DNA from: Klebsormidium nitens
Taxonomy: Eukaryota > Plantae > Klebsormidiophyceae
Direction: 5' to 3'
NCBI GenBank assembly: GCA_000708835.1
Contig: DF237323.1
Span: 26,074-90,073 of the forward strand
DNA length: 64,000 nt
Positions 27,930 to 42,033 of the stretch are shown here, in pieces (the stretch's first letter is position 1; each line of letters begins with the position of its first letter). Under the pieces are notes generated by a model. It was not told the DNA's origin. It searched no databases and saw only the letters and a program-made list of their open reading frames with translations. The position numbers were made by a program, and so were the translations under genes.

Positions 27930-28444
27930 TCATCCTAGCAAGTACAGATTTTGGTGACCGGGGACGGCTTGCCCGCTTCTCCACTCCTCCCCCGGGTCTC
28001 GGAGTGCATGTCCGATATCCGCCAAGACTCGATGGTTCCTACAAATCAGATTATGATTGGTCGCTAATCCATCCTCACTCCCGCAACTAACGGTGATATA
28101 CCTCTCACAGCACACCTCCAGACACTCTCCGTCCCGGGGCCGAGGGTCGAACTCCACCAGCTTCTCAAAGGCGAACGGCCGGTTATGCGTCTGGACGTAA
28201 CGCACGCACCGGATTGGGGGATCGCCGTTACGGCCCCTTTCGTGGTTCCATGCATTCAGACGCCTCTTCAGAGACCCGGCTCTCCCCTCGGGTGTGGCGA
28301 CGACGATCGTGCCGATTTGGATGTCGCCATACGAGGGCAGCGCTAGAAGCAGGAAGGTGACGTAAGCCGCGCCCAGTCCGTGCGCGACGATGTTTGGGGG
28401 CTTGGTCGTGGGGGCGAACTGGAAGATGTCGAGCAACAGATCCT
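27930..28444 (-). CDS. Terminal exon of paralog C: C-terminal half of a class-3 lipase-like alpha/beta-hydrolase domain lacking the catalytic Ser
   Basis: DLLLDIFQFAPTTKPPNIVAHGLGAAYVTFLLLALP...IGTIVVATP...VRYVQTHNRPF...TNHNL lines up with the Lipase_3 order of motifs (GHSLGGA, TFGxP, RxV..D.VP, His). Confidence 0.65.
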
Positions 28445-31400
28445 GCAGCGGGAATCAGGAATTTCCGACTTTCATGCAGACACAAAGTGCACAAGTCCTT
28501 GGAAAATTTGAAGAGCAGCAAATCCTGCAGGGAGAAGGAATATAGACTTTCATGCAGACACAAAGTGCACACGTGTTTGACAGATCTGACGAGCGACAGC
28601 TTCCGCAGGGGGAAGGAAGACAGACTTTCATGCTGACACAATGGGCACAAATGTTTGAGAGATTTGACGAGCAACCGATTCTGCAGAGGGAGGAATACAG
28701 AGGCAGATGCACAGTTTACCAGTGCACTTTTACCTGGGAAACTTGAACATCTAATTTGTGAATTCCTAATTCGTCTTTGATGCCAAAAAGCAGGTGGTTT
28801 GGAAGAACGGCGTCACTGGAATCTCCGAAGCTGAGCCAGACCGCACTGACATTCTAAGAAAGCTCTGAAACACAGTTCTCTACTTTGCACTCGTCCGATC
28901 TCAAGTCAGCTTTAATGAAGGTATCCAGGACCCCACAGAATGCGATAGACGTTGCAAATCTCTTGACGAGCTTTGCGGGCGAAGGTGTTATTCTTTTTGC
29001 TAATTCCGCGGGGCCCCACCGCGGGTAAAGACACTACTGACGGAGATCGCCATATTTTCTCAAGGACCTCTATTTGTGCGACGCTCCCCCAAACCTTCAA
29101 AAAGTTGTGTCCGGGCTTGCCTTGTAGGCTGCTTTTGAAATGAGCATGGCAAAAACAAAGAAACTGGTCTTCTATTAGGCGTGTACGAACGCAATCCAAA
29201 ACGATATACGCTCCTAGTGGTCCTCAAGAGCCTATGATGAAGATTCCTCACGCGGAGGTCGTTGCCGCTGAAATATGCGTCTTCCTTGTCTGAGAACCAG
29301 GATGCGGAACCAAGAGTTCCTTTGGAACGCCACCCGATGACTACGCCCGGGCCGCCGGAATGGATCCCGCTCTGCAATAGCGGAAAATAAAAGTGGAGAA
29401 CTTGACAACAGCGTTAGCCAGAGGCCAGTAGATCTTAGTGGGCGATTGGAAATTCGAAAATCCCAGGGTCAACCCAGATTTGCGAAAAGCAAAACGGACA
29501 CGGGAGCAAGACTGCTGGTTGGATCACACTGGATGAGCTCACCATCAAACGGGCAGCCAGAAACAGCTGCTCGGCCGAGTCTAGGGCAAACCTGTGTCAT
29601 CAGAAGCGGAAGCGTTTGAGTCACTAATTTCTAGAAAGATGAACCATCAAAACTACAAGCTTTCAGACCTTACATTCGCCTAGAAACAAGTTTTCAAGCA
29701 GCATACAAGGAATGTACGTTACGATTAGGATACAATGACCGAGCCGGGACTGCGAAGAGGGGTCTCTCGCCAAAGCGATCAGTGACTGTGCCTAGTTCGG
29801 ACGTCTCTATCAAATATCACTCCTCGTGACGAAAGTTATCCCGGAACATTTGTACCTAGCCTGCGCTTGAGCCGGGTACTGGAATCCAAAGTACTCCACA
29901 TGCTCTCTGAGCGGGGGAGTCGGTAATCGAGGACCGAAGCTGGGGACCTTGTCGGAGCGGATGACGTGGCAAGGTTCCAGCACAAAACCCTCGTTAATGT
30001 AGCGTCTGATACCAAGGCAGTGGACGATCGAGAATTGGTTCTACACATCCCAAACCTTGGTACATGAATCGTTCAAATACATGACTACTTCAAGAATGAA
30101 TCGGGACGCGCGTTGACCTACAATTTCAACAGCATCCCTAATCCAAATTTCAGAGTTTCTGATTTTCTTTGAGTTTCTGATTGTCCTTTTCCCTGCTGTT
30201 TCTGTTTTGATGCGTAACCCGGGCAGAAGATCGCGCCCGGGTCGTCGGTACTGTCGCTCCACGCGGCGTACAGCTCCAGGAACTGTTGCTTATCCAAGCG
30301 CCAGAACTCGGTCACGTGCATGGCGTCGAAACTGATTTCCAGATTCTCTTCGATCGGGATGGACACCTGTGAAAAGGACACGCGAAGCGACGAAATGAAG
30401 AGACTGTTACGTGCGCGAGCGTCGCCCAGCTTTCCGGCAAGCCACGGATAGGTGGTGGTGGAATAGAAGGGCGTCCAAAAACGGGGCTTCGCGACTTCGA
30501 AGACCTGCTGGAGTGAGCCCGTTGGTCGCCGGAACAGGCTTCACTGGTCACCTACCGATTTCTTGCCAGGGGTCGTCTTAAGAATTGCTCAACCAAGGTT
30601 AATATTCCCCTACCGCAGCCCACCTCTTCACAATCTTCCATCAACAAAATGGACTCTTACTGCTGTTTTTCCAGACAAATCTCAACTTTCGGTAGTTGAT
30701 TCATTGACCGTTGGATCAGCTAACTCTGCCAATTGTACGGTACGACTTGTACTCGTCGAGAATATGGGTTTCACGATTTCGCGGGTTTTCCCCAGGGTGT
30801 TCTAGAGATAATAAACAAAACCCTCACAAAGGCCACTCCGTAACGGACACCAAGGCTCGCGTCTCTTTTGCCCTGGGGTAAAAGCGCCGGCAAGTGATTT
30901 CCGTCCAGCACCGGAGATCCGTCGTCCCTTTCCCAGCTCTTGTCGGTGTAGAGCAGTATTGGCACCTGTGCGGACGTCGATATGTTTGTTTGAATGACCC
31001 AACTTTTTCTTGAGCTCCTATGAGAGCCTGAACTAGCTGATTGTAGAATAAGTAGAGCTGTCCAAACCGAAGGCGGAAGTTCGTACAGGCCGCTTATTCC
31101 GAACGGCCCGAGCTAGTCGTGGAGTTGAACATTGAGGAACATACGTCACCGTGCGACACTTGAAATAAAGGCCCTGAAAAAATCTTCCCCTCTTTTGACG
31201 ATTCGTTCCGACATAGACGAGCAGACTGAATTGCAGAACGAAGCCGATAAACTCAAGCGACGCGTAGCGCGAATCCTTACCACTTCGAAATATTCGCCGC
31301 GAATCATTCTCATTCTTTCCATCTGTTCTTCCAAACTCATCGGCGGCGGAATGCACTCGACTCCCGGAAAGGCACCGGTCGCGGCTAGCGTATCCCAATC

Positions 31401-40860: not shown

Positions 40861-41514
40861 TGACTTGCGACCAAACGACGGGCGGAGCTCCGCTATTCGT
40901 ACGGAACGTTTGGCAAAGCTCCAGTGACCAATCAAATCGACGACACGGTTACATAGTATGCCCGTTAACTTGCAAGTAGGAGTACGACGCTGATATTGAA
41001 GCAACATTTAGTTGCTCGGCAGAGAACTATTGTCCTGTTTATATCCTACAACTGTGTAATGGCGGCCAATTGATATCGTACAGCAAAAGGCGGGCAGCGC
41101 TCTTTCCGCCAATCTGCGGTGACAGAAAAGTTGCAGCCCGTGATCTATTTCCGGCAAGTTCTCATGAGCTTCATTACATATTGTCCAAACTCTAGCCGGG
41201 GAGTCAATTGAGCATCATGATTGGATGCTGCATGTGGCGGTAGACAGGCAGATCCGGCCTGCCAGTATGCGGCCGTGATGATAAGGTGTGAACTGAAACC
41301 GTATTTGAGTGTTGACGCAGTTGAAAAGAGAATTTTTGACAGTCTTGCTGCTCCTTGAACGGCGTCGTTTTTTAGCCTTCCGGCAGCTTCGTTCCATGGT
41401 TCAAAAGGAAGTCTCGCACAGAATGTACACTAGTAATTCTAGAACCTTGACTATTTTTACTTGATGTACACAAATATCAAACTCGTACTTTGTTCTGTTG
41501 CCTCTCAATCCATC

Positions 41515-42033
41515 CTACTCTTCTAGCTCATACAGATTCTCGTAACCCTCCACCACCTTTCTCTTCTTCCACTGCTCGCCCGACTTCCGTAGAGTCTGTT
41601 CACTCTCGGCCAGAACTCGACGGTTCCTACACAGAAGATTCTGGTTCGTCACGTCACCATATCCACTCCCGCAGCTGATCGTGACGTAATCACCGCAGCA
41701 CACCTCCAAACTCTCGCCATCTTTCGCGCGATCACTAAACTCCAGCAGCTTCTCAAACGCAAACGGCCGGTTGTTCGTCTGGACGTAGCGAACGCACTCC
41801 ACCGGGGGCTCCCCGTTTTTCCCCCGCTTCTCGTTGAACCGTCTCAGCCACATTTCCAAGCTCCCGGCACTTTCAGCGGATGCCGCGACGATGAGTGTGC
41901 CCAAGTAACGGGTTTCGAATTCTCTGTAGGAGGTTGCTAGAGTGCTCGTGACGTAAGAGGCGCCCAAACCGTGGGCAACTAGGTTGACGGGCTTAGCTGT
42001 GGGGGCGAACTGGAAAATGTCTCTCAGGATTAC
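41515..42033 (-). CDS. Terminal lipase-like exon of paralog A
   Basis: atgcag|VILRDIFQFAPTAKPVNLVAHGLGASYVT...YENLYELEE*; open frame to the stop. Confidence 0.7.
   Translation of the reverse strand, partial: VILRDIFQFAPTAKPVNLVAHGLGASYVTSTLATSYREFETRYLGTLIVAASAESAGSLEMWLRRFNEKRGKNGEPPVECVRYVQTNNRPFAFEKLLEFSDRAKDGESLEVCCGDYVTISCGSGYGDVTNQNLLCRNRRVLAESEQTLRKSGEQWKKRKVVEGYENLYELEE

Follow-up and report, generated by a model that had tools for sequence, protein, structure and literature searches.

Introduction

Pseudoenzymes with an alpha/beta-hydrolase fold are well known, and several of them serve as receptors or regulators (neuroligins, ABHD5, SAG101, GID1). In neuroligins the Ser of the nucleophile elbow is replaced by Gly and in ABHD5/CGI-58 by Asn, and EDS1, PAD4 and SAG101, which form a set of several paralogs, combine an all-helical domain with an alpha/beta-hydrolase-fold domain that does not need to be catalytic or has lost catalysis altogether (the triad is absent from SAG101). 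Here we report on three tandem minus-strand genes of Klebsormidium nitens, a streptophyte alga that serves in studies of how land-plant traits arose. They lie in a stretch of 64,000 nucleotides (nt), hereafter the window (assembly GCA_000708835.1, contig DF237323.1, positions 26,074-90,073 of the forward strand), and their products end in a domain that appears to be a divergent and catalytically dead relative of the DUF900 family (PF05990). The genes KFL_003740060, KFL_003740070 and KFL_003740080 (paralogs 1, 2 and 3) are all annotated as "hypothetical protein". A search of the literature returned no mention of them and only rare mentions of DUF900 itself; as far as that literature shows, this would be the first dead member noted in a family that is still uncharacterised.

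DUF900 belongs to clan CL0028 and is mainly bacterial. Its rhizobial members carry a lipoprotein-type leader (PMC11878206), and brown algae and a diatom encode ROCO-DUF900 proteins (PMC11378527). Cinquedea, from Haloferax larsenii, is a phospholipase A that is secreted and kills bacteria; DUF900 is present in 69% of its archaeal homologs, and its predicted triad is Ser163/Asp231/His275 (spacing 68/44) with a Ser-His-Ser-Leu-Gly elbow (bioRxiv 10.64898/2026.06.10.730825). The Klebsormidium proteins resemble the ROCO-DUF900 proteins in being eukaryotic and multidomain with DUF900 at the C-terminus, and differ from them at the N-terminus, which is LRR-ROC-COR in the latter and an orphan helical region here. 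They appear to lack a leader of the rhizobial type. Whereas cinquedea is active, secreted and single-domain, they are without the Ser and Asp of the triad and have an additional N-terminal region.

Results

An inherited AHGLG motif in three tandem genes

Aligning the window with itself, and the units with one another by tblastx, revealed the same series of conserved coding blocks in each of the three genes (Table 1), and their names and annotations were recovered by a word search with P0001. Full-length proteins were represented by the database models P0004, P0005 and P0001 (paralogs 1, 2 and 3, respectively), and paralog 1 and the genes on the related contigs L004-L006, introduced below, were also compared exon by exon.

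An original prediction, made from the letters of the window, held that the pentapeptide AHGLG occurs three times in place of a lipase elbow, with the central Gly encoded by GGA, GGA and GGT. Pattern search and codon readout bear out the count and the codons. The pattern GCNCAYGGNYTNGG has three matches in the 64-kb window (28372-28385, 34904-34917 and 41963-41976, all on the minus strand), read as GCG CAC GGA CTG GGC in paralog 1, GCG CAC GGA TTG GGC in paralog 2 and GCC CAC GGT TTG GGC in paralog 3. In shuffled windows 0.09 matches are expected and none of 100 shuffles reached three; because the three sites are paralogous, however, they count as one inherited feature and not as three independent events. 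AHGLG lies in the last exon of each paralog. The flanking motifs quoted in the prediction are likewise all present in the translations, within the last two coding exons on the minus strand: G(V/I)(V/I)(I/V)GW(R/P)SxGxLG...W(F/I)SD in the exon before the elbow, and IVVA(TP/AS), RYVQT(H/N)NRPF and TN(H/Q)NL after it.

The C-terminal domain is related to DUF900, not to class-3 lipases

The domain had been taken for a class-3 lipase (Lipase_3, PF01764), an assignment that did not hold. Hidden Markov model (HMM) scans against PF01764 were empty for every paralog, at E<=10 for the single exons, P0001 and P0001:380-688, and at E<=1 for P0005:300-628 and P0004:330-664. The similarity is instead to PF05990, for which the Pfam gathering cutoff is 20.5 bits: P0005:300-628 (paralog 2) scored 21.5 bits (E 1.8e-4), above the cutoff, and P0001:380-688 (paralog 3) 20.0 bits (E 5e-4), just under it. 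The whole-protein models gave no PF05990 match in the Pfam scan, the single exons gave no Pfam match, and NCBIfam gave no match. When the algal domain was aligned by hhalign with three true DUF900 proteins (plasmid-borne and bacterial, with 144-224 bits on PF05990), the match had a probability of 96% and an E of 4e-9 over 208 columns; identity to true members is ~19-21%. In Atlas, the feature neighbours of P0001:380-688 were DUF900 clusters only (0.93; 198-199 of 256 features), and a model made without a multiple sequence alignment matched DUF900 clusters at template-modelling (TM) scores of 0.75-0.82 over 280-294 residues, every row being DUF900. Because the Pfam, hhalign and Atlas matches are all to DUF900 and Lipase_3 is absent, we regard the C-terminal domain, on profile and model comparisons, as a divergent PF05990/DUF900-type alpha/beta hydrolase and not a class-3 lipase. 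True DUF900 proteins give faint Lipase_3 matches themselves (E 0.029 for the protein of L001), which shows shared clan membership only.

Motif order and content are held in common with DUF900 over ~210-290 residues and comprise the N-terminal extra strands, F-x-x-G, (F/G)WPSxG...D, the x-H-x-x-G elbow, the S/Q-x-x-(D/N)-R-x-(L/F) strand and the H loop. The claim that the fold motifs are retained stands, with the flanking motifs matching DUF900 in order. The algal copies differ from the family in that Ser, Asp and, in one copy, also His are replaced, HG has become PG and the APD motif is degraded; their genes are eukaryotic, contain introns and are fused to an orphan helical N-terminus of ~360 amino acids (aa). 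Taken together, the sequences suggest a catalytically dead, divergent relative of DUF900 and not a typical member.

Mapping of the triad positions

The hhalign alignment pairs DUF900 vFVHGyn with algal MFCPGFA, FSWPSqG..Y.aDe with VGWPSEGSLGLGAWFSDKE, LIaHSMG with LVAHGLG, iLAAPDI with IVAASAE and vSrdDrAL with VQT(H/N)NRPF. The motif before the elbow is kept as GWPSEGSLG..WFSDKE in paralog 3 and as GWRSxGxLG in paralogs 1 and 2, and the oxyanion-hole HG of DUF900 reads PG in paralog 1. A second hhalign comparison, in which the last exon of five eukaryotic copies was aligned with 25 DUF900 panel members (66%, E 5.5e-5), reaches as far as the His loop and pairs D..H.Rf with d..nHnli. In an independent MAFFT alignment of 42 rows, 37 have Ser in the elbow column and the other five, those of Klebsormidium type, have Gly; the acid column has Asp (37), Asn (4) or His (1), and the His column has His in 40 rows, with Gln in paralog 3 only. 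The two methods agree on the three triad columns, as judged against 25-36 true DUF900 proteins, and in the DUF900 panel Ser and the mapped Asp are invariant and His nearly so.

The claimed loss of both Ser and Asp in the three paralogs is therefore upheld by two alignments, with Gly and Asn in their places, and can be refined: the nucleophile and the acid are gone from all three, whereas the His survives in two of them and only paralog 3 has Gln instead. Spacing between the Ser, Asp and His positions is 61/51 in the DUF900 panel, 65-69/43 in the algal copies and 68/44 in a Ser-bearing relative (see below). These spacings favour the mapped Asp as the acid of the triad. The Asp of APD, the other candidate, was rejected, since the Ser-bearing relative has Val there and the distance from Ser is ~33 residues, compared with 61-68 in the panel and cinquedea.

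Relatives and the direction of the change

HMMER with a last-exon profile against 1.84 billion representative proteins, with no restriction on length, detected three proteins only, P0001 and two fragments, and the word search with P0001 detected only the three K. nitens paralogs. The contigs of P0003, a fragment of 147 aa, come from two other public runs (L004 and L005; SRR14092358 and SRR14092360). Their gene is ~31% identical to the Klebsormidium copies and has the same exon breaks and the same three last exon blocks, but its triad is intact, with the elbow F-L-S-H-S-L-G-G (Ser codon AGC), an acid Asp (RQDRAF) and His (GKHSY). PG in place of HG is found in this Ser-bearing relative as well. 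Its SHSLG and its 68/44 spacing are identical to those of cinquedea, a comparison made by the motifs and numbers of the preprint alone. This relative, with Ser, Asp and His in the same gene structure, offers a natural contrast for comparing activity with binding.

The contig of P0002 (L006; 15 kb, from a third run, SRR23617307) represents the syntenic locus of a related genome, with a flanking block 75-82% identical to window positions 22328-26840. Its full-length copy reads V-A-H-G-L-G (GGA) at the elbow and has His at the acid position (QTHHRPF), and the triad His is kept. Upstream of this copy lies another that is a fragment (L006:2-604; the end of exon 2 plus exon 3), and the array differs from that of the K. 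nitens window in copy number and orientation. A separate observation concerns (R/K)DGExLEV(C/S)C..Y.T(V/I)(S/D)C, the most conserved stretch of the eukaryotic clade including the Ser-bearing relative (last exons of the window; L004:468-1016), which has no clear counterpart in bacterial DUF900.

Surveyed for Ser or Gly at the elbow, the homologs divide into SHSLG on L004/L005, AHGLG on L006 and Ser in the DUF900 panel. Because the bacterial DUF900 proteins and the Ser-bearing eukaryotic relative, taken as outgroups, have Ser, this residue is ancestral and the change to Gly derived, single and old. By this polarity Ser became Gly once, in one step (AGC to GGC), before paralog 3 split from paralogs 1 and 2 (synonymous divergence, dS, ~1.3-1.5), and the GGA/GGT difference is a later synonymous change. 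The exon alignment had no relatives among JGI metagenome contigs or GTDB genomes, and a word search with the Ser-bearing exon returned that exon alone. The clade is thus lineage-restricted, as far as the collections searched show.

Selection and transcription

Selection was estimated by pairwise Nei-Gojobori comparison of contiguous exons among the three paralogs and L006. For the last exon the ratio of non-synonymous to synonymous divergence (dN/dS) is 0.24-0.43 (0.24-0.29 for paralog 3) at dS 0.5-1.5, with synonymous differences exceeding non-synonymous ones (Fisher p 4e-5 to 5e-13). In the other exons dN/dS is 0.10-0.48. Since all compared copies share Gly and lack Asp, their divergence postdates the loss, and the dead domain has been under purifying selection since then, about as strong as that on the rest of the protein. 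This agrees with the original view of a maintained pseudoenzyme as opposed to random decay.

Contigs of four runs of one study were compared with paralog 1. In runs X1, X3 and X4 they contain the joints 32937|32250, 31882|31454, 31279|30963, 29543|29371 and 29251|28441, the last of these in three runs, and the introns removed read CT..AC on the plus strand, that is, GT..AG on the gene strand. Because the exon joints are spliced, the contigs come from RNA, and paralog 1 therefore appears to be transcribed and processed.

Predicted fold of the domain and of the N-terminal region

We modelled P0001:360-688 with AlphaFold2 (AF2), using an input alignment of algal rows and DUF900 panel members. AHGLG occupies residues 177-181 of the model, with Gly179 between a strand (173-178) and a helix (180-191) in a block with a predicted local distance difference test (pLDDT) of 76-81. 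This strand-turn-helix arrangement is, in the model, the geometry of a nucleophile elbow, which is where the original prediction had placed the Gly. Against Atlas, the AF2 model matched DUF900 clusters only, at TM 0.58-0.63, a result that depends on the alignment used for the model. PDB sequence searches with exon, N-terminal and DUF900-panel profiles returned matches that were insignificant or confined to the elbow. No solved DUF900 structure was detectable by this route, the panel profile touching only the AHSMG elbow of lipase 6nkc, and a weak match of the exon profile aligned AHGLG with GHSAG of a carboxylesterase.

Residues 1-360, encoded by the first three exon blocks, had no Pfam or NCBIfam match and no PDB sequence relative, and in Atlas no usable neighbour (structural TM <=0.32). 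An AF2 model from five rows is all-helical and of low confidence (pLDDT 43.8), with confident helices at ~178-245 and 263-291. The maximum 19-residue Kyte-Doolittle mean is ~1.8-1.9 in all three protein models; its peak lies away from the N-terminus in P0001 and P0004, and in P0005 the corresponding 19 residues start at residue 15. No signal peptide is evident in the Klebsormidium proteins by this Kyte-Doolittle scan, in which no signal-peptide or transmembrane predictor was used, and a leader or membrane segment could be present.

A probable binding or scaffolding module

The reading that we favour, and consider probable, is that of a divergent DUF900 domain whose triad was lost in an ancestor and which has been kept under selection as a non-catalytic binding or scaffolding module. 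The pseudoenzyme part of it is supported, with inactivity deduced from the residues at the triad positions. Each gene encodes a two-part, cytosolic-looking protein of ~630-690 aa, in which ~360 helical residues precede a DUF900-type domain of ~330 residues. In the ancestor of all copies seen, the elbow Ser of (A/S/G)-H-S-x-G changed to Gly and the triad Asp to Asn, followed by a later change of His to Gln in paralog 3. Active relatives cleave esters by the canonical Ser-His-Asp mechanism, which should be impossible for this domain because its elbow lacks a nucleophile and no acid is left to position the His. Without that reaction, the domain presumably acts in a non-catalytic way. Most plausibly, the former acyl/lipid cleft or its surroundings would hold a ligand or a partner protein, and the dead domain would act jointly with the helical N-terminal region and possibly with other paralogs.

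Two variants of this mechanism can be envisaged. In one, a ligand is retained in the former cleft, and it would probably be acyl or lipid-like, cinquedea being a phospholipase A. In the other, the domain might dock or regulate a partner protein, possibly other paralogs or an active relative, much as ABHD5 does with PNPLA2, of which it is a co-activator (10.1101/2025.05.06.652485). Each variant, taken singly, is tentative, and the two are about equally likely. Neuroligins and ABHD5 show the same combination of a replaced nucleophile, a fold under selection and a function moved to binding or regulation; they are, however, unrelated animal subfamilies with known partners, unlike the Klebsormidium proteins. 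In a more elaborate proposal, an early-diverging streptophyte would have evolved, independently, a module for signalling or regulation that resembles EDS1 or ABHD5 and consists of the three paralogs; its dead, phospholipase-type DUF900 domain would bind a lipid or small molecule without cleaving it, or dock and control an active Ser-bearing relative, and the orphan helical N-terminus would mediate hetero-oligomerisation of the paralogs and downstream output. We consider this improbable. The likeness to EDS1/PAD4/SAG101 is one of general design only (a hydrolase-fold part, a helical part and several paralogs) and not of membership; the EDS1 family combines Lipase_3 with a C-terminal EP domain, in the opposite order, and Pfam found neither in the algal proteins.

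Several results weigh against the binding-module reading. The paralog 1 model (P0004:330-664) has no PF05990 match in the Pfam scan, and the DUF900 scores of the others are borderline. The AF2 domain model is moderate (pLDDT 57.6, predicted TM score 0.56; core 70-87), and pLDDT falls to <50 in the final ~85 residues, which include the Asn and the His/Gln. Foldseek of this model against PDB returned nothing at E<=0.001. VIA-align across PDB gave a best Z of 5.9, to the alpha/beta hydrolase 3lp5, with unrelated folds including a TIM-barrel at equal Z; its top rows include cutinases and lipases, for a query model with pLDDT 57.6. The triad of DUF900 is itself inferred from invariance, spacing and a preprint's model, there being no solved structure of the family, and the conserved Cys (FCPG) at the oxyanion-hole motif and the His present in most copies leave room for non-canonical chemistry. 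At the gene level, the exon-5 donor of paralog 1 (CCCGG|GTTACG, compared with CCCGGG|GTAAG in paralogs 2 and 3) is shifted in phase by one base, and exon 1 of the L006 copy is interrupted by a TAA (L006:1950-1952). There is thus turnover in the family, and single copies may be on the way to failure, although paralogs 2 and 3 have clean models.

Four other explanations were considered. The original proposal, a class-3 lipase of the Rhizomucor or EDS1 type that turned into a sensor of lipids or small molecules after losing Ser and Asp, is refuted at the family level by the Pfam and profile comparisons and seems very unlikely overall: the x-H-S-x-G elbow and the general motif order are common to many lipase families, whereas PF01764 matched no paralog or exon at the thresholds given above and DUF900 was found by Pfam, hhalign and Atlas, and the whole-protein scans found no EDS1 EP domain, the domain order being moreover the reverse of that in EDS1. 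A misalignment, with AHGLG not being the elbow and the catalytic residues elsewhere, would be easier to entertain given an identity to DUF900 of only ~19-21%, a modest last-exon profile match and PDB fold matches no better than those to unrelated folds. Yet the two alignment methods agree on the three columns, the motifs follow the expected order (VPxLLyTD, SIP, FxxG, GWPSxG, xHxxG, RxF, H), SHSLG of the Ser-bearing relative falls at exactly the same place, the AF2 model has strand-turn-helix geometry there, and the weak PDB match sets AHGLG on the carboxylesterase GHSAG. Of the explanations considered we find this one the hardest to credit.

Alpha/beta-hydrolase folds support several different chemistries, and the proteins might still be enzymes that act by a non-canonical mechanism. 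They could, for example, use His-dependent chemistry with another nucleophile, such as the Cys in FCPG or in LEVCC, activate water, or catalyse a reaction other than hydrolysis. Conservation of His in paralogs 1 and 2 and on both related contigs would fit such a mechanism, as would the conserved Cys residues and the strongly conserved DGExLEV, which are otherwise unexplained. On the other hand, paralog 3 lacks all three triad residues and is equally constrained (dN/dS 0.24-0.29), the elbow Gly is no nucleophile and Asn cannot serve as a charge-relay acid, and PG for HG, being present in the Ser-bearing relative too, is no compensating novelty; we therefore judge continued catalysis unlikely. 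Slightly less likely still, in our view, is that the copies are decaying members of a birth-and-death array nearing pseudogenisation, with the triad change as part of the decay. There are indeed signs of failure, namely the 57-codon relic (Table 1), the shifted donor of paralog 1 with its RNA-like contig running into a stop, and on L006 the TAA in exon 1 and the other, truncated copy. But all last exons are open, the P0001 and P0005 models are complete, dN/dS is 0.24-0.43 at dS up to 1.5, all of it after the shared loss of Ser and Asp, the Gly codon has changed synonymously (GGA/GGT) and still encodes Gly, and the downstream exons of paralog 1 are correctly spliced in three runs.

In practical terms, the three "hypothetical protein" entries could be re-annotated as "DUF900-like, catalytically inactive", with a C-terminal fault flagged in the KFL_003740060 model. 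The finding is newly recognised but unsurprising, and opens no long-standing question on present evidence.

Features and gene models of the array

Table 1. Mapped features of the Klebsormidium nitens array, in window positions.
Feature	Positions	Strand	Basis
Paralog 1 gene, KFL_003740060 (model P0004); takes in helical N-terminal exons and C-terminal DUF900-like exons	27930-33464	-	tblastx blocks, word search, contig joints
Paralog 2 gene, KFL_003740070 (model P0005, 628 aa)	34447-40353	-	tblastx blocks, word search
Paralog 3 gene, KFL_003740080 (model P0001, 688 aa)	41515-46980	-	tblastx blocks, HMMER, word search
Paralog 1 last exon (elbow, acid position, His position, stop codon)	27930-28441	-	unbroken contig cover; 28441 joined to 29251
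Paralog 1 exon GWRSKGTLG...WFSDKED, counterpart of DUF900 FSWPSxG..Y.aDe	29251-29371	-	tblastx, contig joints, hhalign
Equivalent exon, paralog 2	~35468-35617	-	
Equivalent exon, paralog 3	~42559-42708	-	
Paralog 1 exon ending IFCPG, counterpart of DUF900 vFVHG	30220-30387	-	tblastx, hhalign
Paralog 1 exon, start of DUF900-like domain (VPILLYTD...GVAFV; DUF900 V.TVYyATdR...yGev.VSIP)	30819-30963	-	tblastx, hhalign
Paralog 1 nucleophile-position Gly, GGA (AHGLG 28371-28385)	28377-28379	-	aligned to invariant DUF900 Ser
Paralog 2 nucleophile-position Gly, GGA (AHGLG 34903-34917)	34909-34911	-	hhalign, MAFFT
Paralog 3 nucleophile-position Gly, GGT (AHGLG 41962-41976; Gly538 of P0001)	41968-41970	-	
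Paralog 1 acid-position Asn, AAC (QTHNRPF)	28182-28184	-	hhalign, MAFFT
Paralog 2 acid-position Asn, AAC	34702-34704	-	MAFFT
Paralog 3 acid-position Asn, AAC (Asn604 of P0001)	41770-41772	-	MAFFT
Paralog 1 triad His kept, CAT (TNHNL)	28053-28055	-	last-exon hhalign, MAFFT
Paralog 2 triad His kept, CAC	34573-34575	-	MAFFT
Paralog 3 Gln in place of triad His, CAG (TNQNL; Gln647 of P0001)	41641-41643	-	MAFFT
Inverted 57-codon relic of the last exon (...EDGAATNHNLICRNRWVLADIG...HQNLYLLGD, then stop), without upstream exons	19788-19958	+	

The exon 5-6 region of paralog 1 (30100-30230 and 29543-29904, minus strand) is read along three different routes. In the database model P0004 the donor is a GTAGGT further downstream, so that FCPG is followed by 32 additional residues; the RNA-like contig extends to a donor at 29855, and its in-frame reading hits a stop; and a script joining candidate exon ends found a possible frame-keeping route through a 49-nt exon, which has no read support. 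The C-terminus of P0004 (...DGECLEA VLRSAPV...) requires an intron within the last exon. Because contigs span 27930-28441 without a break, this end is probably wrong and the true one reads ...NHNLICRNHRVLADIG...HQNLYLLG. The inverted relic sits where L006 has its full-length copy.

Two further observations concern the introns and small exons of the array. The intron before the last exon of paralog 1 (28431-28701) contains 3-4 tandem copies of ~82 bp, which look like "echoes" of the splice junction because every copy ends with a version of the acceptor plus exon start (...ctgcag...). Paralog 1 (29534-29593) and paralog 2 (36449-36508) are identical on the minus strand over 60 nt made up of the 49-nt micro-exon FALDSAEQLFLAARLM and its borders, while the neighbouring exons are only ~80% identical and the paralog 3 counterpart differs. 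This identity could stem from gene conversion or from strong splicing constraint.

Neighbouring DNA

Upstream of the array, positions 48451-54143 (minus strand) contain long open reading frames that encode a ubiquitin-binding zinc finger of the UBZ type (PF18439) and the terminal part of a Y-family DNA polymerase domain (impB/mucB/samB). This neighbour is probably a polymerase-eta-like gene and has no evident link to the array. The first 17 kb of the window hold two pairs of direct repeats (286-1396 with 8415-9541, and 11296-12041 with 16011-16756; 67-71% identical, 0.8-1.2 kb) that may be other tandem gene duplicates. On the bacterial side, a patatin-like phospholipase gene lies ~0.8 kb downstream of a true DUF900 gene on plasmid pBC201 of Paraburkholderia atlantica (L001:1048-3378), which may hint that bacterial DUF900 works in a lipid-related context.

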